The notes under the pieces are model-generated. The model saw nothing but the letters and a program-made list of their open reading frames with translations, did not search any database and was not told where the DNA came from. The position numbers and the translations under genes are program-made. 64,000 bases of DNA from Dimorphilus gyrociliatus (lineage: Eukaryota; Animalia; Annelida): contig CAJFCJ010000003.1 in assembly GCA_904063045.1 (NCBI GenBank), positions 2,094,504-2,158,503 on the forward strand, in the 5' to 3' direction. This document shows, piece after piece, positions 1,662 to 28,630 of this stretch. Numbering within the stretch: the stretch's first letter is position 1; each line of letters opens with the position of its first letter.

Positions 1662-4646
1662 ATGCATTGGAAGCTCTTTATAATTGGTTTAATTTGTATG
1701 ATATATGAAAATGATGCTGATGAAAACAAAACGCAAACTAGTTATGATTTTAAGTTATTTACTCTAAACAATGGTTGGTAATTACAGTATACTGTTTATT
1801 TAGAATAGTTGAATTGATTCAAAGCTTCTGAATAGTAGTATTCTAACTTATTCTATTTTTCAGAACTGCTCGTAACATTCAACGGTTTCTACACCAAAAG
1901 TGTTCGACGACAACATATAATATCAGCCCTAAGGAATATAAATGAGTTCAAATTTGGTATAAAACCTCATTTGAACGATCTCAAAACAATTCTTTCAGAT
2001 TTTGACGTTGTATCTTTTGATTCACAAAATTTGACACAAGTACAAAAAGTGAAGAATACTCTTACTAGGTATTCAGCTATAAAGACAGTCACAGCTCATA
2101 AGAAAATTGTACAAAGTCTTAAGGATACAAGTGAAAGAGATGCTCAACGACATCCGTTGAGGTGGACAGGGCCTGTTGGCCACATCACTAACGTTGTTGG
2201 AGCTAATGAGTTATGGTCGGCAGGAATAACAGGCAAAGGGGTTAAAGTTGCGATATTTGATACTGGTTTGGCTGCTTATCATAGTCATTTCAAAACTAAC
2301 TGCATCTCTGAAAGAACCGATTGGACATCAGATGGAAGTTTGGAAGATAATGTTGGCCATGGAACTTTTGTTGCAGGAGTTATCGCCTCCTCTTCACCTC
2401 AGTGCCCTGGGTTAGCCCCTGATGCTAAGCTATATATATATAGGGTTTTTACAAGCCGACAAATATCATATACTTCCTGGTTTTTAGATGCTTTTAATCA
2501 TGCTATATCTCGTAAAATTCGAGTTTTAAACTTATCAATAGGTGGTCCTGATTTTATGGACGCTCCATTTTTAGATAAAGTTCGTGAGTTAACGGCCAAT
2601 GGTATAACCATGGTTTCAGCTATTGGAAACGACGGACCACTTTATGGGACGCTTAATAATCCTGCAGACATGCCGGACGTTATTGGTGTGGGTGGTGTTG
2701 ATGAAAATAGAAAAGTTGCAAAATTCTCCTCTAGAGGAATGACAACTTGGGAATTACCGAATGGCTATGGAAGAGTTAAGCCAGATGTTGTCACTCTGGG
2801 CTCAAATGTTCGTAGCTCATCTTTAGGAAGAGGATGTCGAACTCTATCCGGAACAAGCGTGGCATCTCCAGTCGTTGCAGGAGTTGTTGCTTTGCTATTA
2901 AGTGTTGCTCCACAATCCTCTCCTATTGCAATCAAGCAAGTGTTGATGGAGACTGCAAAAAGAACACTCGGTGCAAATATTTTTGAACAGGGTGCAGGAC
3001 AAGTTGATGCTGTTCAAGCCGCCGCCTTATTACAGAATTACAAACCTCGGGTCACCTTACACCCACCCTATATTGATTTAACAGAATGTCCCTACATGTG
3101 GCCTTATTGTACTCAACCTTTGTTTGTCGGAGCTTCACCTGTAATCGTGAACGTTACAGTATTATCAGGTTTATCCGTTACGAGTTACATAAATTCGACA
3201 CCCATCTGGCATCCATACACCCCTCACAATGGTAACATGTTGGAAGTCTCAATATCTTACTCATCTGTATTATGGCCTTGGTCTGGTTATTTGGTAATTT
3301 CATTGTATGCATCTGAACATGCAGTTAATTTTGAAGGAATTGCTCATGGACATGTGGAAGTTACTATTTGGAGGGAGGATTACAAATCTAATAGTAATAT
3401 TACACTTCCCGTTAGAGTCAAAATTATTCGCCCCCCACCGAGAAATAGAAGGATAATCTGGTCTCAATGGCACCAGGTGAGATATCCATCTGCTTATGTA
3501 CCAAGGGATGATTTAAAAATGAAAAACGACCCTTTGGATTGGAACGCTGATCACTTACATACCAATTTCCGTGACTTCTATCAACAATTACGCTCTGCTG
3601 GCTATTATATTGACGTTCTAACAACGCCTTTGAATTGCTTAGATGCCTATCAGTATGGGACATTACTTCTTGTCGACATAGAGGAAGAATTTTGGTCTGA
3701 AGAAGTAATAAAATTACGTGACGATGTTGTCAATAAGGGCTTATCTGTTCTTATTATAGCCGACTGGTACAATACAACTGTCATGAAAAAAGTAAAATTT
3801 TTTGATGAAAACACGCAACAGTGGTGGCTGCCAGTAACTGGTGGATCAAATATTCCTGCCCTTAATGATCTACTCAAGCCTTTTGGTATATCATTATCAG
3901 ATAAAGTTCTAGAAGGTAAGTTTTCTGTTGCTGGTCATGAAATGTATTATGCTTCTGGAACAACAATATCATCTTTTCCGGCAAACGGAAGGTTATTATC
4001 TGTATCCCTCAACGATCAAGGTCATGATGTGATAATAGGTTCTCAAAAAGTTGAAAAGCTACTCCCATTACCAATTAGTGGAATACTTGAAGCCGAGAAA
4101 AGCACTGGTGGAAGAATAGCTATATATGGTGATTCGAATTGTGTGGATTCAAGTCATATGCAAATTGATTGTTTTTGGTTTATCTTGTCTCTACTAGATT
4201 ATACGAATAGCGGAGTAATATCTTCTCCGCTTTCAGAGCATTTTGAGAAGAGAGATTTAATTAAAAGGGGCAGAGATCCAGAAAGAATGGAAGGAAGTCG
4301 CCTGAGAGAATTCACTAAAACTAATCGAACAATCTTAGATTGTCCAAGGATTCATTTTGCAAGTCCTCGTTCCTTAAATATTACAATTAATGAAGGATCA
4401 TTTAGACGAATGAAACTATTTTCTTTACCCTTAAAAATCAAAACTTTCCCGAAAAACCCGGCCGTCGAACAAGATACGGTTACAAGCATGCCTACTACAG
4501 TGTTAATTTTAGCCTTCCTCTGCTCTATTTCAGTTGTTTTATTCTTCATAAGATTTTGGTACGGAAGGAAGTTTAGGCGAAGGAGTCACCGAGTGAAAGA
4601 AGCCAACAGGATTTACTTTAGTAACAGAGTTGGATTTTCGGCATAA
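1662..4646 (+). CDS. MBTPS1: Membrane-bound transcription factor site-1 protease (SKI-1/S1P), subtilase
   Basis: Exon 1662-1773 (hydrophobic signal MHWKLFIIGLICM) plus exon 1864-4646, phase 1. Catalytic triad motifs FDTG, GHGTFVAG and GTSVASP; VLNLSIGGPDF; C-terminal TM and basic tail. Confidence 0.97.
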
Positions 4647-13197: not shown

Positions 13198-16100
13198 ATG
13201 GATAAAAGCAAAATTGGTAAAATCGGCAAAATACGCAACTATGTAAATACAGGAATCGAAAAGCTTCGGCAGAGCGTTACCACTTCCCAACCTAAGTATG
13301 AAGTGGATTTGGAAGAACTTACTCCCGAGCTTTTTCAAGTTCGAAAAGTATGTTATTTTGTATTTCATCTCTTACAGATAATTGTTGTTATTATAGAATG
13401 TAACGTTATCATATGTATCATTGGGCTCTGCAAATTCTTTCGTAGTATTTATAATATCGAAGAACATTTGATAATTTTCAAACGGGCAAACCATTGCAAG
13501 TATAGGTTGTCACCGTAAATAATTGACGATGCTCGTCGGTCGCTTGCAGGCCAAAAACAACTTGGATACGCTTTTTCAAACAATATAGCTTTAGTTGATT
13601 AACACTCGATTTCTATGACGTAATTGATTTATGGTTTGTTCCCAGCTCATCTCGTAAATAATGCAATATAATTTGGAAATATTTTGCAAAATAAAATATA
13701 AAATCTCTACAAAAGCATATACTCCAAGGGCGCGTCGCGCATTTTGTTTAAAAATCAATCAATGATGATGACGTCAGTTCCTGGTGCGGTAGTGTTTGTC
13801 ACGTCTTATTAATTGGAATGCTGTTCGGGTATAATGGTCTTGGATTCATTTTAAAAGAATTGTTTCTCTTTCTAAATGAAAGTATACTTCCTTTCAAAAG
13901 TTGCCATTTGAAATGTCAGTCTGATGGCAGAGGAAAAAAATAAGAGACATTTACGAAGTATTTCAAAAGCATTTTTCTTAATTAGTCACTTAGTGAAATA
14001 TGTTTATCATATTTTTTTTCTCTAGTCGTGTAATTAAAGCTTAGCTAGTTTAGCCTTCTCTTTGAAAGGCAAATAGCGCTAGTCAAGATGTTAAATTTCA
14101 AAGTTAGCCCTTAAAATTAGTCACTAATTCTTAGGGTTTTCTTCGTCTACGTTTTCTTTGAGTGACTAAAAAATTGATGACATTGTTTCGCCTATATTAC
14201 TATAATTTTTTTTTTAAATAAAGATAATCCATTATTTTCATTAATCATTACGTTCTCCTCGAATCATTTATTTATTTCTCTATTTTATTTTATAGACTCT
14301 ACGCCACGGTTTTCCTTACGAACCCACGGCCATTGCCTTCGATCCTGTACAGAATTTATTGGCAATCGGAACGAAGAATGGATCGTTGCGAATGTAAATG
14401 TATAGATTTTAAAAATAACGCAAATTATTATATTGATTTCCTAATCACCAGACTGGGGCGAGCCGAGGTCGATTGTCATGTCAACCACGATGGTTCAGTC
14501 GAAGTACAGCATATAGTCTTCCTCATTAACGAAGGTTCTCTAGTCACCTCCTGCTACGACGAAAAAGAAAAACGTGCCGAATTGCATTTATGGAGTTTAA
14601 AGAAGAAAATACCGTCCATTGTCTACTCACTACAATTCCAAAGAGATCACATAAGCTGTCTTCACATACGCTTCAACACAAATTGGTTGTACGTTGGAAC
14701 GACGAACGGCAATGTTCATTTTGTTGAAGTTGAAAAGTTTTCTTTAAGTTCCTATGTTATACATTGGAATAAAGCGGTAGGCACTCGGTGTAATTCTCAT
14801 CCAGGAATGGTCGTACAAATGGCTGATAATCCTATCGAAGAAAATCAGGTAAATAATAAATAATCATGACAATAAATTACTGTCATTTGAGATATTTTAT
14901 ACCTCATTTTGAGGAAAGTAGCAACAGACGTAAGAGAAGCAACTACTATTTTAACAAAAAAGACTTTATATTATTAGTCACTTGCACAATCAAATTTTAG
15001 AATTGTGAAACACGATCTCCTATAGGTGTTTAATATAGCTGAATTCCTCTTGCTTAGTGATTAATTAAACAGCAGATTTTTAACCTCAAAATTAACTTCC
15101 TGTTACTCAATTATTTATAAATTTTTATTTGTTCCCTTGGGCAGTGACAGATAAAACAATACTCATCAATATCGCTTTGACGACTATTGAATCTGTAATG
15201 GGAATGTAAAACAAAATCAAAATCTCATTACTATTATTATTTATACATTTTCTGTTTTCTAATTAAATTTTTTCTATTTCTGTTACGGTCGTTAGTGAGA
15301 TATTGGGTTTTTTTTAAAAATATATCAGGGCACATTTCCTCTGATGGTATTCCCGAATCAGGTAAACCGTGAACTAAGCTCATTAAGAGTTATTGGGAAA
15401 GGGATAATGACGAAATTGAGCGGCAGCGGTCGTAATAAATCTACCGCAACAGCAGCAAAAATCGATAATGCAATTTTTTTCTTGTTTCATAGCTTCTACT
15501 CGCTTTCGAACAAGGCCACCTAGTCCTATGGAATTTACAGCAGAAAGAAGCTGACGAACGTTTCAACTGCAACGAAGGAATTACTTCAGTTTCTTGGCAC
15601 TATGATGGTAAATCATTCGTGTGTGCCCACTCGACTGGATCTTATTCAGTTTGGAAGTTAAATAAAACTGATGGACCTTTCAGTCGGCATAAGAGTTCCG
15701 ACTCCCGTTGTACCCCAATTCATCGAATACTGCAAACTTTCTGCAAAGCCTCTAACGAACCTTATCTTATATTCAGCGGAGGTGTTCCGATTGATAGAGA
15801 TAGTTCTATGAGAGCTGGAACGGTTACAATCAAGCATGCAAAAAATACTATGAAATTCGAACTAGAAAGTGATGTTGTTGATTTGCTTGTGCTAGATTCC
15901 ACTCCATGGCGTAATGAAGTTTCTGATCCTAAAGCCCTGGCAGTTCTTCTAAACCATGATCTTATTCTTCTAGATTTGGAATCTTCAGAACATGCAAGGT
16001 TTGAATCTCCTTATCCTATGGATTTGGATGAATCGGAAGTAACTTGTTTACAGTATTTAGCTGATTGCACCCCTGATCTTATACCGGCTTTATACAGTGC

Positions 16101-19100
16101 TGGTTCTCGCTCTGGTAATACGAATTCTGGCAAACCTTGGCCGCTACTTGGGGGCGGTTGTGTTAATTCTAATTCGTCACTGGAGGAATTAGTCATAACA
16201 GGTCACGCAGACGGATCATTAAGATTTTGGTCTGCGTCTGCAGGAAGTCTACAGATTCTGTTCAAGTTGAAAACAGTTCGGGTCTTTGAAAGAGCCCCAA
16301 GTACGGCATCTGAATTAGATCCTCTGGCTATTAAGGTTATTCATCTAGATCCCGAATCGAAAATGTTGGTTGTTGGTGGGAAGACTCATGCAACTTTATT
16401 TTCCTTTTCAAAATCGGAAGCAGTTGTGGAAATTGGTTGTGTGGAGGTCGCTATAGTGTACGATGTTAATGATGACCTTGATTCACCAGAAAGTGAGCAT
16501 CCGCCAAATCTTTCGGCGCAAAATAGTCAAAGTTCGGCTGCTTCGGACGGGCCAAGTAGGTCTGACGTGACTACACTGAGGGTTCGATCCAAACCCCGAA
16601 ACTGGCCAGCAGGTTTCCAGCCAGATATAGCTTGCGTCCTATCGGCTGTCGACGGAGAGCCTCCAGGAGCGGTTACATGTGTGGCTTTGAGCGCTGTTTA
16701 TAATCTTATGGGGATTGGTACAGAATACGGATTAGCTTTAATTGATATTACACACCGAACCTGCCTATTGTCAATTGGTACGCCGGATTTGTATGGTTCA
16801 TTGGACCCTTACACCAGAACTCCTAATCCAAAGAGTCCCAAATTAAAATCGGCTGGTCCGTCGTCTTCCTCCCGTTTTCAATTTCAGGATAACCCCAATT
16901 CGTCTTCGAATGCGACTAATGATGATTGCAGAAGTCCTACAAGTGATCAGGTGAGTGTTTTTGTCATGTTTTTAAAGAACCTAGTTAGTCAGTCGGGGAA
17001 TTTAAAAAGTAAAAGTCATGTCGTAATGAGAAAATTGACATTTAAACTGGCAGACGTCAACACCTTATCTACAACATATGGCAACACTCGAATTGCCATC
17101 GTTTGTAAGTGATTTTATACATGTTTGAGTCTTTTACGATAACCTTAATCACTTATACCTCTTCTAAAACAATACTGGATCGTTTTTTAAGATCAGCATG
17201 TTTACATATTCGTTTTTTCAATTTATGTTTTTTTTACGAGTAATCGAATTCTGTAGCGCTGCGTTGTAAAACTTACTGCCTATTGAAATAACTCGATAAT
17301 TAACATACAATAATGCGTTACATTTAAAAGTATCTTTCTTCTTTTTTTTCAATGTCGAGGTGAGATATCTCTTTAATTATTTGGAGTATAAAGGCTTTTT
17401 AAAGAAAAAAGAAAGAACTTTAAAGTAATGAGCTTTAATTATGAAAGAATACTAAAACTAAAACAGTCTAAATAAGTAGTAAGTTTCTACAAATTCCGGT
17501 GCACTTTACCCGTTTTGAGATAACTAAAACTTGAAACTGAGCACGCCACTCTCCTACCACAAAAGATGTTGATGAGTCGAAATCATATAATGTTTTTTTC
17601 TTGCTCATGGAATTTGCAAGATGACTATGTATGAAATTTTTATACACGCCCTGTTTCATAAATAAATCGACATTTATAAGAAACAGGTATACAATTTTAG
17701 AGATTGGATTATTTGCAACAAAAACGACTACAGTTTTTCAAGACAGACAACAGAGTAGATAGGCAAAGAATTAATAAATGGATTTCTAGATACTGTATAT
17801 AATATAATCTATATTCTCTAGCCTAAATTATATAGCTATTTATTTATTTATTTAATTAGTTGGCTGTGGTATAAACAATCGTGTTTATATGGGTATTAAT
17901 AGAAGGGTTATACAAGCCTATTTATGATTATTTACTATATAAATCTATAAATACTACATGAATAAAAATGAAACGAAACCACACAAAACGAACAGCAAAA
18001 GACACATCCAGGAGTCTGTTGTGATGAGAAACCGAAAGCTCCTCCTCGCCTAAAGAAGAAGAAGGCATCTGAGGAGAAAAAGCGACCACCTAATCTTCGT
18101 CTAGATCCCCCGAATCCTTTAGAGGGTATAAAAAGCTCAAATTCGACACCAAGTTTGTCGAGACAAAATTCAGAAGTAGAAGTTGTTCAGAAGCAACCCT
18201 ATACAGCCAATGCAAACCTTTTGGAGCCTAACTTCTTTTTTCCGACATCGTCAAAAAGCGAGGATGAATTGGATAGTAAACCTCGGCAATCTTTTTTATC
18301 TAGTATAACAAAACTCGTAAGGGGAGGTTCTTTAAAAGGGAGTTATAAGTCGGAAAAAGAGGAAACAACATGCGATAAATTTGAAAAGTTCGAAGTGACT
18401 GATTTGAGAGAGGATGAAGATAGTTTGAAACGATCTGGTTCGTAGGTCGGCTTTCTTCTCCAGACAAAACAGCACAGCTTCAATATTTCGCTTTTTCTTA
18501 CTTTCCTAATTTTATCGTTTCATTTAATTTAGTTCGTAATTGTATTTTATGATAGCGCACGCGTTATATGTACTTTTTTCCGCAATTTGTATTTCAAGCA
18601 ATGTTTTTCTGGGTTATTTTTCTCCGAATAGTCCATTAGATAATATAAATTTATTCCAATCGTTCTATTTTTCGGAAGAAAACAATATTTTGAAAACAAT
18701 ACACCCAGTCAAACGTAGCTTGATTAAAAAGCTTTAACGAAAACTCATAATTAACTTTCTTTAATCTATCCGCTGCTTTTGTAAAAAAAAAGGGTACGTT
18801 CTTCGTAAATTTTATCTTGTTTCCTTTTTGCTTAATCGCTTAGAACAACGGCGGCGCGGTTCATATCGGTGTCGGTGGACGATTAGGTGGGAAGAAGATT
18901 TTAGGAGAATTGAAGAGATCCAAAACCAATACGGCGCCGTCTAGTGGAAGTTCGAGTCCGTCAACGACCCCAACTTCAAGGCGTCTTGTTAAAGCATTTT
19001 CGACTACATCTAGCTTGGATGCTATCGATTATTTTCAAACGCCTGGTGCGAAATTTGTTGTTCGAGCTTGTTAATATCCAGCAAAAAATATTTTTACGCA

Positions 19101-22100
19101 CATTTGCAGTCGTGATAATTATAATGTTCAACTGGCACCGCTGTAACCGCGTCGTCCGTTTTTTATAGTATATTTCTGCATGATATTTAGTGCATGCAAT
19201 CTTTTTGTACACACTATGCACTCCCGTTAATTGGAATATTGAACGAGAAGTCAATAACCAGATATTAGATTAGCGCCCCCTGCAAAAAACTGGTTGTTTT
19301 CAACAGCAATGAATCATTTTCTGATGATATTATATTCAATATATTCAAAGTTGGATGATATTTTTTCATTTAAATATCACACTAAATGATTTGCTAGAAT
19401 ATTATAAAAAATTGGGAAACTTTCGTTTCGGATTAAACTTATTTCGTTAGATATAAAAATTTATTCTTTGCAGTAAACACTATTTAATTGAGTTTAAAGA
19501 TATTATAAGAGCCATTATCTAACATAAAACAGTTGTAATTTGATTAAAAGTTTTATTAATCCAATTAACGAGAGTGAAGGTATGAAATTCATTTTATATT
19601 TTTCGATTTCTCATTTTACCGAAACGAACTCCTAATCGAAATGTCCTTTTACCATCTCACTCCGAAAGCTTGGTTTTTGCTTAACCTTCGTCACTCTTTC
19701 CCATCACAATACTATCCTTTAATAATTTCGCTAAAACAGCATTTACTTTTTTAATTATATTTTATTTTATATTGTTTTTGCTTTGAGTTTTGATTTCTAA
19801 TAAAAACATTGTAGGAGGATCGACAGAAGGAGCTATGTTCTCGAGATCTCGGTCGTCTTCCATGTCGTCGACGGATCAAATTGTAACTGCCGAGTCTATT
19901 ACTTGCTTGTCATTGGTTGATTCATACACTAGAAAAACTGATACGAATAGATCAGCTAGTGTTTGGATAGGAACTTCATTGGGTTCGGTTCTGGTCCTTA
20001 CCCTATCACCACCGACAGGTGGGGGAGCTGGGGATGAAGATGTGAGTTTAGACCTAGTTGTACTCTCTCCAAATGAATATTATATTACTTCATTATACTA
20101 AATGAATTATATATCTAAATTAATATTAAAAAAAAAACAGATTACCCTAATGCCATCACCATCCGGCACGATTTTCCGGTTGAAAGGAGCCTTAATCTGC
20201 ATTTCATTTTACGACGTGTTAACAGTACCAGTTTGTAGCAATGACAATTCAGTGGAAAATTCCCAAACGACGCCTCCAGGACCTACTTCAACTACTTCCA
20301 GACAACGAATACAAAGTAAGTGCTTTAGCGGACGTGCGCTAAAGCGAGTTTTGTTTTCTTTTCACCTCACTTTTTTTATATGAATTTGCTGACTGAACCG
20401 TAAAGCCGTTGTTCGGTTTTTTATTACGCACATATTTTATTCCATCCATATATAATGTATTTATACTGTATAAATATATATTACATATAAATTATACTGT
20501 ATATAGACCAAACTATCTGCAGTATACATATATATAAACATATATGTATATATATATATATGTAATATACGTACTTATCTTTCTATCCACTACAGTATAT
20601 ATATAGATATATATGTGTATTAGTATATATATATTAATACATATATATATCTATATATATTGATACATTTATCTATTTATTTTTATATTTATATCTCTCT
20701 ATATATATTTCTACATTCTTACTTACGTGTAATCGTGTGTGCAGTTTATACGTCTTCATTTCCTTTATATTTTCTAGCTTCCGGAATGTGATAGCGGTTA
20801 GAGATGCTGGAGGATGTAAGCTGTTACAGTTTCATCCTTTCACAGCGAACTGACAGCATTATACCGCTACATTTTTTTTATATTTACATATATCTCAAAC
20901 GTTTGCTATCCCTGCTCTCACTTTCTCTGAGGATTGGATACCCAGCTATTTATTTTTCTGCTAGAATTAGAGCACTTTTATTATAGAGATTTTATAATTT
21001 TTTCTCAATTTTTTCAAATTTTTCTTAAGTTGTTGTGCTTGCTACTTCGAGTATCAATTTTTCCATACTACCTGTTGTTACAATGTTATATTTCATATAT
21101 TCAGAATGCCCTTTTTTCTAAATTTTTATACCTTTTTCTTGATCATTCCGTTCGGTTTATTTTACAAACTGAATGGAACGAATTATTTTTAGTTGATTTT
21201 AAAAGATTTTTGAGAATAATAATAATAGGTTTTAGAATGTATGATTAGGGAATTAAAATGAAAAAAAAGTAGTTTTTGATAGCTATTAGGAAATCGAAAG
21301 CTAAGCAGATTAGTATGAGCTGTATTTTAGAGCGTTTTAACCGTATTCTCTAGACTTTCACAACGAACCATTCCCAGTTAAATTCATAGAAAGTAGTTGT
21401 TCTTATTAATAGCCTTTAAAAAGAAATGTTAAATGGACTAACTATTGGAAAAAATATTGATTCCCAGTGTTATGGTTACAATCGTTGTGAAAGTAGAGAA
21501 TAAGCACGTCACTGGCAAAAAATTTAAACTGTAAATTGAATGCAGACCGAAAGCTTTTCTCATGTTACTGTTGCTGCGCGTCAGCCAGAGGTATTTGAAT
21601 CACACAAAAAACCAGACGTTTTAAATTTGTCTCTCTTCGCGCAAACGGGCAAGTTCTCTGATATTACCGTTTCAGCTTGGTGTTTGCCTAAACTAGCAGA
21701 GAATTCTTAGCCGGGTTTCTCTATTCAAAAATTGCTATTTTTGCACCAGAGAAATAGTCAATGAGAATAAAATATAAAGTATAAAAAAAATGATAAAGAA
21801 TAAACAGAGAAAGCGGGACAAGGACGGAAAAAAATATTCCTTTTTCCGTTACAGATGAAGGTAGTGCCAGTTCAAAGTGGCAAAAGGCATTTCAGAATAT
21901 TCGCTCGCAAAATTTACAGGACTTACCAAAAAAAGGTAGATAAGCGTAGAATTGTAGGTTTTTCAAGTATATCTAGGTACTTCTCATAGATAATATATAT
22001 CATATTTTCATTCTTAGAGTCTAAGAGAGAAATCTTCGACCGAAAATATTGAAAATATATTATCTATGTTATACATTTCCAATCTAAACAAAATATGTGA

Positions 22101-22947
22101 CACAGGGCAACAGTCGGTGTCATCATCGCGCGCCAAAATCTCGCCGACAACTTCACAAGAGCAATCGAATGATAAACAACTCGTCATTTTGTGTTCGGAA
22201 AAGCAAGCTCGTGTTGTTTCGCTGCCATCTCATCAGGTGGTTCACAAGGCCAAGTTGACAGATTCGTATGTTGTCGTTAGAGCTAATGTTATTCAAATTA
22301 AAGAGACTTTATGTCTTGTGGCATACGTTTCTAATGGACGAATAATGATTTTGAGTATTCCATCTTTAAGGCCACTTGTGGACTTTGATTACATAACACC
22401 TCAGCTACCTGAGCAATTTGCATCTACATTTTGTTTCTCAACTGGAGGTCATGCTGCTCATATGTGCTCACCAAGCGAGCTGCAAAAAGTAACTTTATGC
22501 AGTCAGTCGGAACAGTTCACAGAATCTTTATGTGATTTGTACGTAAATAAGGAGGCTCCGGTTGAGCGAAAACCAACGTTATGGTCTAGTTTGATTCGTA
22601 AGCCTGTCAAAGTTGATAGGCAAGAACTATGTATGATAATTTTTCATGTTTACTTTACAAAACTATTATTGCCTCTTTATTTTTTTATAGTTGGAAACTG
22701 CAGTAAGTCTACAAGTAGATCGGTAGCACATCTTGTTAAAGGTAATAAACTAAGTGCCGAAAAAGGGAGAGCCGACCAAGCAACGTCTGAAATTCAAAAA
22801 GCAAAGATGGCAGCATTGGAAAGAGGTGAAAAACTGGGTAAATTGGAAGAGAACACGGCTCAGATGATGGATGCCGCACGTAATTACGCCGAAAATGCTC
22901 ATAACTTAGCTAAACAGATGGAAAAACGAAAATGGTATCAATTGTAA
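13198..22947 (+). CDS. STXBP5: Tomosyn / syntaxin-binding protein 5 (WD40 propellers plus C-terminal R-SNARE motif)
   Basis: Core exons 13198-13347, 14296-14393, ~14452-14848, ~15493-16950, 18844-19045, 19815-20041, 20141-20315, 22106-22630 and 22691-22947. Motifs TLRHGFPYEPTAIAFDPVQ, FSRSRSSS, SPSGTIFRLKG, and R-SNARE ERGEKLGKLEENT...KWYQL. Candidate alternative exons are listed under findings. Confidence 0.95.
19271..19284 (-). promoter_or_regulatory. CTCF-like site TGCAGGGGGCGCTA
   Basis: Close match to the CTCF core in otherwise AT-rich intronic DNA. Related sites are listed in findings. Confidence 0.5.
20451..20710. repeat. Imperfect (TA)n-rich microsatellite region in a tomosyn intron
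   Basis: Dense run of tata/atat units visible in the sequence. Confidence 0.8.
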
Positions 22948-24442
22948 ACGCTTTCTCCTGCAGAAGCTCGGAAAAAAGGAATAAATAAAGGGAAAAACTA
23001 AATATTTCGCCATATTTTCTTTTCGACTCATTACAATTCTCTCTTTCTGCAGAGGTTGATTCGAACAATATTTTCCTTTCAAATCAGTATTAATTATTTA
23101 TATATATACATATATATATAAATCGAATCGACCTCGTTCAGCACCTAGTTAGCGCAGACCAAAAACGTGTAAAAAATGTTGTAGTTGTATCTGTGATACA
23201 CTTTTTCTCGACTTTCTACATTCTGAAACTGCTACCATAGTTTATATAGTCGAGTTAAAAAGCGTACGATGTAAAGAATATTCATTTTTTTTACTGTTCG
23301 TGCGGTCTGTACAGTCGGTGAGCACCTTAAGAACATTCGTTTTCCCCGATGTTGTACAGTATGCGTGTTTTTGACAATGATTCATATGAGAAAATATCAT
23401 GCATGTTAAGCAATAGAACTTGAATGCAATATAAAAAAGGGAAATTTTTACTGCTTCTCATTTCCATTACATTTTCAGAACCAAAAAACTGCACCTTTAT
23501 CGCAGTTCTATCCTATCGTAATAACCTTTATTGAACAAATAAATCTTTTCTGTGTTCGTTTACTATTTACTCCTGTTTGCTTATATTTTAGGAATCAATT
23601 CCCAAATCATAGAGTTCGGAATTTATGCAATTTACAATTATCGAAGCTTGTTTGTCTATTCGAAATGTTTGTGACGAGTCGAGCAATTTTCCGTAACAAG
23701 AATGGGAAAGTACTTATTTCCAAAAATATGGCATATCATGGTTTATTTCATATTGTAATTGGTTATTTATATTGCACTAAAAGGAACATTGCAGCAGCAC
23801 TCCTATACTGTATTCCATAATTTCGACACATGTTAGTCCATTATTATTCTACAAACAAACAAAAATATCATTTGTATAAACAATTAATAAAAGTCTCTTA
23901 TTTGGATCAAAATGTGTATCTTTATGCGAATTTGGTTATAAATACAAATAAACACGTTGGAAATTTGAAACATTCTGATATCGTTTAAAGCTTATTCTTT
24001 TTTATCATTACGTATAAGTAACACTTAAAAATAGTTTTTACAAATTCTCGATTGTATTTAAATAATAGAAGCCCGCGTAATTAGATTTAGACCAATCGCC
24101 ATGTTCTCGCCGTGTCCCTAAATATCTCGTGAGATGTAGTAGCCGACGCCATTTTTTAACGGAGGCGATCCTACAACAAAGTTGCTTCATCAATCTAGTT
24201 ATTGTAAACTCTAGCTGAATTTTGCATTACTAAAAAGGATACCAATAAGGTAAAATGATTATTTTAGAAAAAAAGGAGCTCTAAAAATGCTTCACGTAAT
24301 AGAAAATACTTTCTTTATTAATTTGTCATCCCTGAGTATGGTAGCGCCCAAACCAGGCGATTTAATCCTTGTAGTATGGGGGTGTCTACAATTTTAACGG
24401 CAAATAAACTAGTCGAAATGGTTTCTTTCAGGTCACCTAAAA

Positions 24443-27400
24443 ATGGACGAAGAAGAAAACAATGGAGAACCATCAAGTTCCGATGGATGGCCCTCAACCA
24501 CTCAATACGATCAAATTATGCAAATAACCAGATCCCATTATATCTCTTCAAATCAATACGAAAATCAAGCAGGACCGTCCACTAATTTTTCGGTTTCTGA
24601 TTTGAATGTTTCCGACCAAGACTATGCAGTACAGTTCTTAATACCAAACGGAGAATCTCATATACTGGCTCCATCAACTTCTAATGTATCTTCAAGAACC
24701 TATTCCGATACTTCGGAGGCTTCTCCTTTAGTTCATTCTTTAGACAGATTGGTCAAAAGTCATGGATTAGATAGTTTTCAGAATGAGCCTGATACAACCC
24801 AAGAAGACAGTCAGGATCATTTAAGTCAAATTCAAGCAGAAAGAATTATAGCTGAAGGTAAATAATCTTAATATTCAGATATAATTAAATAGTTGTCGTT
24901 CATTAATTATTACAGCATTAGAATAAAAAAGCTAGATAGTTGTTGTTAACTAATTTTTTAAAAAAAGTGATTATATTGATGAGAGTTCAAGTCTTGGAAT
25001 TGTAGTTGAAAAATTTGCAAAAAAAAAGTAATATTTGAATCATTTTACCAGCTGCAATATCCGATTCGAATGCGGTTGTGGACAGTTCCAGTGGAGTCTT
25101 AGATTCTACTGTCAGTCAAAGCTCACCAAATATTGACGCATGTCAACCGTCGACCACGTTGGATGCGAGTATTGATACTACAATGAAAACACCTAATTCT
25201 GTTGTCCAAGCAAGAATTATTGAAAATTCAGATTTGGTAATAACTTGTCAAGATAGTGACATACAGTCGACTGAGAGGAAAGCAAAGAGAGGTGTTGGTA
25301 TGGAAGATTTCGATGGATACTTTAGGGTTATGGAGTACAACGTGAATCAATTTTGTAAGTTATTAACCTTAAAAGAAAACAAAAGCTTATAGATTTTTCT
25401 TTCAGGGTGTCAAGACTGCAGCAAATATTATGACGAAGAATGTCTTATACATAATATACTCTCAGTTCCTGATAAACCTGTCGATTCGAAAGCTCGTGCC
25501 ACTTGTCCTGCCCAATTATGTATTGGAAAAATCGATGGTCAAGAAGGCGTTGGTCTGTTTGCTAAAAAGAAAATTTTGAAAAGAACAAGATTTGGACCAT
25601 TTGAAGCAGAATATGAAAGAGAATCTGATGGGCAAGGCTTTATTCTTCCTGTAAGTTGAACGTGACGAATCTTAATATAAGCACGTTTTAGAGTAGACAT
25701 TTCTATATTTCTCGTGCCCTTTCTTAATCTCGTGGAAAAAATAACTAAGCTGACGTTTACGCACACAACAATCCTGTAACTTCCTCGTGTATGAGCCCAA
25801 AATATAGCTTGAGGGGGCGCCATACATCTCAGATTGGCTAATTCTATTCTGTTTCAGATTGAAGATAGCGAAACAAAAAATATTGTCTACATTCAGGCAA
25901 CAGATGAATCGATCTGCAACTGGATGATGTTCGTGAGGCCAGCAACTGATCACAGGCATCAAAATTTAATGGCTTACCAACACGGGGGCCATATTTACTA
26001 CAACGCTTTAAGAGATATTGATGTCAGAGAAGAGCTTAGAGTACGTGCCCACTTTCTTTATTTTCTTGTAGTTGACACGCTGAAATTGATTAAGCTGGCA
26101 GTTAATTTTATTAAGATTTCCAGCCACTGACAGAGCAGGCTGGCTTAGAAATGGAAGAACTGCAATATTATTTGATCCTTTGCTTTGATATTCCTGTTGA
26201 AATATGAAAGATAATTGATGATGTTTTGCAGGTTTGGTATGCACCGCCGTATGCGGCAAGATGGGATTTTGAGTTGTTGAAAGTTGATCATGAAGGAATC
26301 GGTTTGTAAAATGTTGATTAGAAATATGTTATTTAATTGATTTTAATTTCATTCTTCGATAAACAGCCGAATCGGACAAAAAATACAAATGTTTTGAATG
26401 TTCGGCAAGTTTTGAGACACCATCAAAGTTTGAAGCTCATTTAAGTCAGCACGAAGCGGGTATGTTTGTCTGTCTCTTCTTCTATATCTTAGCACTAAAG
26501 AATTTCTTTATCCAGAAGAAGAAAGGGAAGAAGCACGACTGAAAGTATCTTTGAAAGGCAAAAGAGGACGTAATAAGGATAATGATTACATACAAGCCAA
26601 TTTGAAAAAGCGCAAAAGTTCTATCTACTTGAATAGGTAGTTTTTAAATAAAAGTCTCTTTGTGTGTTTCATTAACCACTTTTTAGATTATCGAGGGATT
26701 CTGTTAAACGATCTTTAAGGAGAGTACAACAACGAAGAGTGTCATGTAGTGTCTGCAATATGGCTTTCGATGATACTAGAATTCTAAGTATACATGCAAC
26801 TTCACACGAAGAACATCCTGTTGAGTCAATAGACTATGGTAACTATCAATATTCTATTTTAGAATCGTCTTTGACGTCTCTTTTTCCGAAACAGAAAATT
26901 TAACGTGCCCAGTTTGTAACAAGACTTTCGTGTCGCATGGAGAATTAGTAGAGCATACCACAAGTCACGCTCGGGTTAGACTGTCAATGAAGAAAGCACG
27001 TTTTAAGCCGTTTACGTGTTCAACTTGTCTTAAAGTAAGTCTAAAGCTATCCAGTATTATTCTTTTATCTAAAATTTAATCTATTTTCATAAAATTGATG
27101 CTATTTTGACAATTGATTTTTAAATTTAGAAATTTACAACTCATGAACGGCTAGAGGCCCACAGAAAAGTTCATACTGGAGGTGATGAAGTCAGACCATT
27201 AACTTGTAGTGTCTGTAAAAGAAAGTTAATGAATAACTCTGCTTTGGCATGTCATATGAAGACACATTCTAGCGATAAATTTTTTGATTGCCCAATTTGT
27301 GACGAAAAATTTGATCAAGTTCATAACTTAAAAGTACATGTCAAAGGCCATTCGGTGAATGGATGCTATTTTTGTCCAAAATGTCCTAAAAAATTTACCG

Positions 27401-28630
27401 AATATGTACACATCAGAAAACACATGAAAGCCGTACACGGTGATAAATGTTTCCAGTGCAGTCAATGTCCAAAGTAAGTTACTCATTTCGCAGAAATTAA
27501 AGAGATTAAATTTAAAGATTTTTTTCAATAAATTCCTCGTGGATTCTTTCCCTATAGAATATACAGCCTAAGAATCTAATGGAAAATAATTCTTACTAAC
27601 TTTTTAATTTCATTAATTTTTCAGATCCTTTCCGAGAGCGGATAAACTGCGTTTGCACATGCTAGTTCATTCGGATAAAAAAGAGTTCATGTGCGATCAA
27701 TGCGGTCGGCAATTTAAAAGAAAAGATAAACTAAAAGATCATACAGCCCGAATACATAATGCTGACCGTAAACCTCGTCACCGTATTGGTACAAGTCAAA
27801 GACGATCTAATCAACAAGATGATGATAGTGAGCTACAGTCCTGTCGCGCAAATAAGGTTCCTCCGACTGAGTATCAACGTTACGTATACAAGTGTGAAAC
27901 TTGTATGCTGGGATTTAAGCGTAGAGGAATGTTGGTTAATCATTTGGCCAAGCGTCACCCCCAAATGTCAATTGAAGAAGTTCCCGAGTTGACCTATCCG
28001 ATTTTGAAGACACAGAGGGATTATTATTGTCAGTATTGTGATAAAACATATAAAAGCAGCTCTAAGAGAAAGGCGCATATTCTAAAACATCACCCTGGTC
28101 AGGAATTACCGCCTTCAGGCAGACATAGTACAATGGATGAGGGAGATAATACATTTAGCACGCCAGTTGGAAATATGACTGTCACTCCCCACGCATGCAA
28201 TATGTGCCATAAGCAATATGCTAGTAGAGCAAAATTATTTCAACATCAAAGAAAAGACCATCCACAACATAATTTGGCCCCACCGTTACTTAAAAAGAAA
28301 GCCACAAAATTACCCACTGATAATCAAACTCAATTAGTCGGACAGATATTGGTACAGGATGGTACTGGTGGAGCTGGTCATACTCTCCTTGTGCCTCAGC
28401 ATCAATTTGTCTTTCAAAATGATCAGGGTACTAGTGATCAACTGCAATTGATAACCTTCAATGGAAATGACCTGCTGCAGCAAGCTGTTTGTGAGGCTAT
28501 CTCTCCAGATCAGCGTCTAAACGTTTTACAGCTACAGCAATTTGGAAATGAAAACACCATAACATTGAAGAGTGGAAATGAAGGTACCTCTACTCTGACC
28601 CATTTCGAATCGCAAGAAGACAATTTGTAA
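24443..28630 (+). CDS. PRDM10: PR/SET domain zinc-finger protein 10
   Basis: Zinc knuckle WCQDC..CLIH; PR domain KRTRFGP and CNWMMFVRPA..QNL.AYQ..ELRVWYA; C2H2 array with PRDM10 signatures GFKRRGMLVNHLAKRHP, EEVPELTYPI and YCQYCDKTYKSSSKRKAHILK. Confidence 0.93.

Follow-up and report, generated by a model that had tools for sequence, protein, structure and literature searches.

An apparently lineage-restricted cassette exon of tomosyn in the annelid Dimorphilus gyrociliatus encodes a conserved peptide with a predicted amphipathic helix in a disordered propeller loop

Tomosyn (STXBP5-like), a decoy SNARE that acts as a brake on SNARE assembly, is encoded in Dimorphilus gyrociliatus, a miniature annelid with a genome of 73.8 Mb (PMC7854359), by a gene that contains a genuine alternative cassette exon of 81 nucleotides (nt). 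This exon occupies positions 21855-21935 of the window, the 64,000-nt stretch of contig CAJFCJ010000003.1 (assembly GCA_904063045.1) that was analyzed and to which all coordinates below refer. Both the included and the skipped forms are represented among transcripts, and the exon is almost unchanged at the nucleotide level in a related genome. We consider it probable that the exon contributes a lineage-specific, splice-regulated docking helix to the flexible loop adjoining the tail of tomosyn. Under this proposal, inclusion would put 27 residues in the middle of a loop of the C-terminal beta-propeller, where the segment ASSKWQKAFQNIR would fold into a short, basic amphipathic helix, one face of which carries W, F, I, and A; the helix would alter what the loop binds and so tune the SNARE-motif-independent part of tomosyn braking. 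The docking partner is quite possibly another protein of the fusion machinery or the tail of tomosyn itself, although this is a tentative assignment that we hold with less confidence than the docking role. The elements of the cassette region are as follows.

21855..21935, forward strand: cassette exon, 81 nt, phase 1 to 1, encoding EGSASSKWQKAFQNIRSQNLQDLPKK plus two junction codons
20141..20315, forward strand: constitutive exon upstream of the cassette, ending in phase 1 (joints 20041>20141, 20315>21855, and 20315>22106)
22106..22630, forward strand: constitutive exon downstream of the cassette (Pfam Lgl_C), encoding the remainder of the loop (QQSVSSSRAKISPTTSQE) and the last propeller blades
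21936..22105, forward strand: 170-nt intron downstream of the cassette, with the weak donor GTAGAT, kept in one contig of run X1

The exon had been proposed from the sequence as a skippable, frame-preserving unit, and re-reading of the sequence bore out its coordinates, splice signals, and phases (1 to 1). The acceptor consists of a pyrimidine tract and an AG at 21853-54, reading cctttttccgttacAG followed by A at 21855. The donor reads AAAAAG followed by GTAGAT (GT at 21936-37) and deviates from the consensus (GTRAGT) at +4 and +5. The upstream exon, which ends at 20315 one base into a codon, is followed at 20316 by a perfect donor, GTAAGT, and the exon at 22106 is preceded by acacAG. The splice sites of the cassette are canonical, its length is divisible by three, and it is open in the frame of the gene: inclusion translates to (N)EGSASSKWQKAFQNIRSQNLQDLPKK(G), and skipping leaves a single Arg codon.

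Logan contigs of four sequencing runs were placed on positions 17000-22960. These runs differ in their likeness to the window, from mostly 90-95% for X3 (“organism A”) through 95-99% for X1 (a marine metatranscriptome) to at least 99% for both X2 (a coral metatranscriptome) and X6. In X3, the joint 20315>21855 is present in a depth-301 contig that runs over 19814-20042 and 20142-20315 and then 30 letters into the cassette, and the joint 21935>22106 is present in a depth-231 contig with 79 letters on the cassette side; both sides of the cassette are spliced at depths equal to those of constitutive exons, and the skip joint was not seen in X3 contigs. X1 yielded both 20315>21855 (depth 9) and the skip joint 20315>22106 (depth 5.6). 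X2 yielded the skip joint only (depth 3.8, 97 letters on the shorter side), and no X6 contig spans the cassette region. The skipped form is represented also by the public D. gyrociliatus protein DgyrCDS2387, a C-terminal fragment (378 residues) that matches the tested exon with 100% identity and reads SRQRIQ-R-QQSVSSS at the cassette site; the cassette is thus absent from this public model. All joints in the cassette region are of the GT..AG type and both forms were observed, well in excess of what chance would produce, so the exon is truly used and truly skipped. In-frame skipping, as predicted, is documented in X1 and X2, and the question of whether the exon is ever spliced in is answered by the two inclusion joints in transcript contigs.

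Conservation was analyzed in one genomic set (contigs L001 and L002, reached via P0151, a close relative of the product of the downstream exon) and one transcript set (X3). L001 and L002 are syntenic with the window, with the same PRDM zinc-finger gene following tomosyn, and show about 76-81% identity to it across aligned blocks. The cassette itself is identical at 78 of the 81 positions in L001, with both splice sites kept. All three differences fall in third positions (K, I, and D codons), so that the 26 codons compared contain three synonymous and no non-synonymous changes. The other segments of the gene compared with L001 are listed below.

19814-20041, exon: 76 codons, 35 synonymous and 4 non-synonymous changes
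20141-20315, exon upstream of the cassette: 58 codons, 7 synonymous and 3 non-synonymous changes, 94% nucleotide identity
22106-22630, exon downstream of the cassette: 173 codons, 50 synonymous and 10 non-synonymous changes
21805..21854, forward strand: conserved intron flank with the pyrimidine tract and AG acceptor, 46/51 identical (90%)
20316..20500, forward strand: conserved intron start and candidate splicing control element, 179/186 identical (96%)

Synonymous change thus affects 3 of 26 codons in the cassette versus 29-46% of codons in exons 19814-20041 and 22106-22630. Conservation extends into the flanks: the 50 nt preceding the flank 21805..21854 are 34% identical to L001 and the rest of the intron upstream of the cassette 34-71% (69-71% beyond the conserved start 20316..20500), and the first 50 nt of the downstream intron (21936-22105) are 78% identical. 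The exon is conserved in the L001/L002 genomic contigs and in the X3 transcripts, and its flanks are conserved in L001. This substitution pattern indicates purifying selection on the cassette peptide and, at the nucleotide level, points to constraint on the cassette, the preceding exon, and the intron flanks beyond coding needs. Low synonymous change combined with conserved intron flanks is the usual signature of regulated alternative exons.

A block of approximately 250 nt (20250-20500), which reaches from the end of the upstream exon to nucleotide 185 of the intron, has 96% identity to L001 and exceeds most coding exons of the gene in conservation. In the minimum-energy fold, a perfect 10-bp hairpin (GCUUUAGCG...CGCUAAAGC) immediately follows the GTAAGT donor; folding of the whole stretch 20316-20500 gave z = -0.9. 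The hairpin, or the block 20316-20500 as a whole, is likely a splicing control element for the choice between the acceptors at 21855 and 22106. Long-range pairing of this block with the flanks of the cassette was considered and rejected: for the upstream flank, 17 of 300 shuffles were equally good, and for the downstream flank, the pairing was worse than the shuffle average. An inverted-repeat scan was swamped by TA-rich simple sequence.

The gene was identified as tomosyn because Pfam searches detected LLGL, Lgl_C, and Synaptobrevin domains among its exons. LLGL was found in 15493-17109, a 539-codon exon (E = 5.6e-20), and Lgl_C in 22108-22941 (E = 7.9e-9); Synaptobrevin, in the same region as Lgl_C, scored 26.4 bits, exactly at the cut-off. 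The LLGL and Lgl_C matches, together with alignment to Llgl1/2 structures, identify an Lgl-type double WD40 propeller, with the exon 22106..22630 aligning to the final blades of Llgl1 (810-935) and Llgl2 (796-914; human, solved structures 6n8p and 8r3y). The Synaptobrevin match, the alignment, and a helix modeled with AlphaFold2 identify a C-terminal R-SNARE that lacks a membrane anchor: the C-terminus can be aligned with those of other tomosyns through KKWYQL, and the model of the public skip isoform contains a long helix at residues 311-371, in the R-SNARE region. A HMMER search of 1.84 billion representative proteins retrieved 254 relatives of the product of exon 22106..22630, of which the best named are gastropod, arthropod, and fish syntaxin-binding protein 5, at no more than 53% identity. 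The gene and its last exon have the following extents.

13198..22947, forward strand: tomosyn (STXBP5-like) gene from the likely start codon to the stop, an approximate span based on open stretches and Pfam matches
22691..22947, forward strand: last exon with the R-SNARE motif (Pfam) and the stop codon, ending in KWYQL; joint 22630>22691 found in 4/4 runs

The position of the cassette within the protein was examined in an alignment of 31 tomosyn C-terminal regions, which was also used for the AlphaFold2 model of the public skip isoform. The cassette site is flanked by the strand SF[LY]D on one side and by the conserved segment [KR]-[IM]-SPT-x-S...Q-x-x-V-x-CSEKQA on the other; at the same site, the other animals in the alignment have a loop that varies in length and contains many charged residues. 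The upstream exon supplies the final beta-strand (ALICISFY) together with the initial half of the loop. In the model, confident strands at residues 78-85 and 143-149 enclose residues 91-140 with a pLDDT of 45-53, and the cassette enters at residue 118/119, the middle of a disordered loop of approximately 50 residues in the C-terminal beta-propeller. Tomosyn propellers contain three disordered loops, and alternative splicing in such loops is known in mammals and flies (PMC5529015; PMC8612732). The loop that accommodates the cassette follows the hypervariable region and the FSRSRSSS motif and precedes the tail and the R-SNARE; because of this order along the chain, it would correspond to tomosyn “loop 3.” Deletion of loops 1 and 3 reportedly abolishes inhibition and leaves syntaxin pairing unaffected (Williams et al., 2011).

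At the beginning of this loop, E-x-W-[KR]-D is found in most of the bilaterian tomosyns aligned, and NSVEN in D. gyrociliatus (20230-20260). The constitutive sequence has Val in place of the conserved loop Trp, and the cassette supplies a Trp approximately 30 residues later. We considered whether the cassette Trp is the conserved loop Trp of other tomosyns (19 residues separate it from the Q[QM]SV motif in D. gyrociliatus vs 20 in Bulinus) and rejected this equivalence as less likely because the alignment puts NSVEN of the upstream exon at the position of the conserved Trp. Equivalence of the cassette loop to the aPKC/polybasic loop of Lgl was rejected because of its position.

AlphaFold2 modeling of a 31-mer containing the cassette peptide predicted a 13-residue helix over ASSKWQKAFQNIR, with a mean pLDDT of approximately 86 at residues 11-20. 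In helical-wheel projection, A, I, W, F, and an L further along fall within an arc of about 120 degrees. Calculated over 11 residues, the hydrophobic moment reaches a maximum of 0.55-0.58; the insert as a whole has a net charge of +3. Shuffles of the 28-residue peptide on which the moment also was computed, including two junction residues, placed hydrophobic residues at +4 and +7 from a Trp in 1.3% of cases, and in 0.16% when a local charge of at least +3 was demanded. Among 600 Trp residues of tomosyn relatives, 2.8% have this spacing and none also has the charge. Any hydrophobic 1-5-8 triplet is common (about 42% of 27-residue windows). The joint arrangement of the Trp, the 1-5-8 spacing, and the charge is not a trivial result of composition.

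The original prediction interpreted this peptide as a Munc13-like Ca2+/calmodulin site, such that inclusion of the exon would make the brake that tomosyn exerts on SNARE assembly calcium-sensitive. The sites of Munc13-1 and ubMunc13-2 follow a 1-5-8-26 motif in which position 1 is Trp (PMC7017353), and the cassette peptide has the corresponding first half: positions 1, 5, and 8 hold the bulky hydrophobics W, F, and I, with Trp as the first anchor and K/R around them. The amphipathic face with its moment over 11 residues, the predicted helix, the rarity of the arrangement among shuffles, and the purifying selection on the peptide are all in keeping with a calmodulin site. Over nine residues, WQKAFQNIR and the Munc13-1 site, the sequence of which we take to be WLRAFNKVR, share four identical and two to three similar residues and conform to the common pattern W-x-[KR]-A-F-x-x-[IV]-R. 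The parallel stops at this half. The second hydrophobic contact of the Munc13-type motif, at position 26 (Trp in Munc13-1), is in our case the Ser in QQSVSS of the next exon, so the cassette lacks the second anchor of the 1-5-8-26 motif. For the canonical classes (1-10, 1-14, 1-5-10, 1-8-14, and 1-16), the second anchor, a helix of 16-20 residues, and strong charge were likewise not found: Ser and Gln occupy positions 10 and 14, respectively, Pro17 comes directly after Leu16, and the helix is predicted to end at position 9. The defining second anchor is thus missing for every calmodulin-binding class checked. The net charge is only +3 over 27 residues, whereas classical calmodulin targets carry about +5 to +7. 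The IQ motif ([FILV]Qxxx[RK]Gxxx[RK]) was rejected as well, with two residues between Q and R in FQNIRS and no Gly.

Searches for similar peptides also speak against a calmodulin site. A phmmer search of the PDB with a 26-aa peptide query retrieved only a helix of the glucocorticoid-receptor ligand domain (KWAKA...FRN; E 0.7-1.5) and no calmodulin target; such matches are at chance level, so the resemblance to Munc13 is no stronger than that to unrelated look-alikes. The motif is absent from all other tomosyns examined, and an interaction between tomosyn and calmodulin is not reported in the top-ranked of the 114 papers in which both are mentioned. Calmodulin binds many basic amphipathic helices, and some binding in vitro is plausible; because of this promiscuity, weak binding of the peptide in vitro is likelier than physiological control. 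Our analysis neither supports nor refutes the calmodulin reading, and we regard physiological control of tomosyn by calmodulin through this exon as unlikely.

The same features of the helix could also reflect membrane binding. Inclusion of the peptide (K-W-x-K-x-F...R...KK) would in that case help to retain tomosyn at membranes that are acidic and rich in phosphoinositides, much like the Lgl polybasic loop, through which members of the Lgl family bind the plasma membrane. An amphipathic, basic, Trp- and Phe-bearing helix in an exposed disordered loop would suit this role; however, the charge is low, and the polar face consists mostly of Gln, Asn, and Ser rather than Lys or Arg. Moreover, the Lgl polybasic loop lies elsewhere: the exon following the cassette aligns to Llgl2 from residue 796, and the aPKC-site loop of Llgl2 is presumably well upstream of that residue. 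We view membrane binding, too, with considerable doubt.

Several observations weigh against the docking-helix proposal that we prefer. The assignment to “loop 3” is based on chain order and the established loop numbering, and the helix prediction used one sequence only, the first three residues of which are non-native. Complete inclusion, with both joints, is documented only in X3, a relative 90-95% alike, and the runs nearest to the window, X2 and X6, give the skip joint only or no joint; the Logan contigs say nothing on inclusion level, tissue, or stage. The cassette appears to have a narrow distribution. The orthologous intron of Bulinus truncatus (L004), which is located at the same place, before RQMSV, contains no cassette look-alike (tblastn, nothing above noise); a degenerate DNA pattern for KWQKAFQNIR had no matches in metagenome contigs; and a scan for W..[AGS][hydrophobic]..[hydrophobic][RK] found the motif in none of 158 tomosyn and Lgl relatives. 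The last result is in line with the original remark that no such motif was known from vertebrate tomosyn, and the proposed search for the exon in related species succeeded for L001/L002 and X3 and failed for the Bulinus intron and the metagenome contigs. So far, the cassette is known only from D. gyrociliatus and its close relatives. Finally, the X1 contig that uses the 21855 acceptor is unbroken on 21855-22135 and retains the intron 21936-22105; as a result, a TAA at 21941-21943 is in frame and the protein would be truncated. This contig may be a half-processed transcript or a truncating isoform devoid of the last propeller blades and the R-SNARE.

The retention contig brings up the further alternative that the exon has no molecular function of its own and is either a tolerated loop spacer or, together with intron retention, a source of unproductive transcripts that lower tomosyn output. 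The loop varies in length and sequence across animals, the only X1 contig with the cassette acceptor runs through the next intron to the stop at 21941, and the exon is missing from the public annotation, all of which would fit. The cassette, however, accumulated no amino-acid changes against three synonymous ones, and the constitutive exons compared gained 3-10 amino-acid changes each. In X3, furthermore, it is spliced on both sides at constitutive-exon depth with no skip joint, and it is stop-free and preserves the frame. We consider this alternative very improbable, more so than calmodulin or membrane binding, and retain the docking helix as the preferred interpretation.

The gene has other sites of variable splicing. 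Logan contigs point to a hypervariable region of its own, with optional exons between 16950 and 19814. A large exon at about 17993-18437 is present in X3 at roughly half the constitutive depth, with a canonical join to 19815; X2 contains a possible 54-nt mini-exon (17051-17104), and an X1 contig lies on 18848-19093. The skips in this region (loose ends from 16950 in X1 and X2, and 17104>19814 in X2) carry one G beyond the canonical GT-AG boundaries; the frame is kept only with the extra G, so that the intron reads GT..TA or TG..AG. Because L001 has the same genomic arrangement at these skip junctions, this is not an assembly slip. The last intron (22631-22690; 60 nt) is in frame and stop-free, and its retention would add 20 residues; it was removed in 4/4 runs, and its boundary was misread by gene callers on the contigs of relatives (P0001, P0151). 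DgyrCDS2387 spans only the last four exons, from an internal Met, and the frame-consistent upstream LLGL exons lie outside its 378 aa; lacking these exons, the public model looks truncated or split. Upstream of the gene, an intronless subtilase-like open reading frame of 935 codons occupies 1839-4643, and downstream, a PRDM-type C2H2 zinc-finger gene occupies 24413-28627 and is still beside tomosyn in L001. A search of the whole window against Rfam detected no families.

Alternative exons that remodel propeller loops of tomosyn are already known from the mammalian hypervariable region and from Drosophila 13A/13B. The variants of mammalian tomosyn-1 and -2 (s-, m-, b-, and xb-) resemble the cassette in that frame-preserving alternative exons alter a disordered loop of the WD40 propeller (PMC5529015; PMC8612732, citing Williams 2011 and Groffen 2005). 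These mammalian exons, however, are located in loop 2, which contains the SUMO site K730, and the cassette is located about 130 residues further on, in the next loop; their sequences are unlike that of the cassette, and an amphipathic Trp helix is not described there. In Drosophila, 13A and 13B are mutually exclusive and unrelated in sequence to the cassette, which is an include-or-skip exon, and the two isoforms rescue release equally. Munc13-1 and ubMunc13-2, presynaptic priming regulators, share with the cassette peptide Trp1, hydrophobics at positions 5 and 8, and a basic amphipathic helix (PMC7017353), but the cassette has no anchor at position 26, a shorter helix, and a lower charge, and is not homologous to the Munc13 site, to which its resemblance is local. 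The polybasic loop of Lgl (Llgl1/2), which belongs to the same double beta-propeller superfamily, is a regulated basic docking loop of the second propeller; it is, however, another loop, its regulation is by phosphorylation instead of splicing, and its basic character is far stronger. What appears to be new in D. gyrociliatus, as far as the modeling indicates, is an alternative exon in a different loop and a different phylum, with no sequence relative, that would encode a helix.

The bolder version of the hypothesis, in which dinophilid splicing installs a calcium/calmodulin- or membrane-binding switch helix in loop 3 of tomosyn, strikes us as somewhat less credible again than calmodulin control or membrane binding as discussed above. 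If it were true, presynaptic calcium would release or tighten the priming brake of this decoy SNARE only in cells that include the exon, mirroring the calmodulin control of Munc13, the antagonist of tomosyn; binding of the helix to calmodulin would be the first direct link between a calcium sensor and tomosyn. The exon seems to be confined to one small annelid lineage, and its general reach would accordingly be limited. The practical value is modest: the results correct an incomplete public gene model, and the conserved intron block is suited to the study of regulated splicing. Tomosyn sets synaptic release probability, and the contribution of its propeller loops is poorly understood. The conserved optional helix would offer a natural handle on this contribution, in the form of two isoforms 27 residues apart in an animal with a compact genome.

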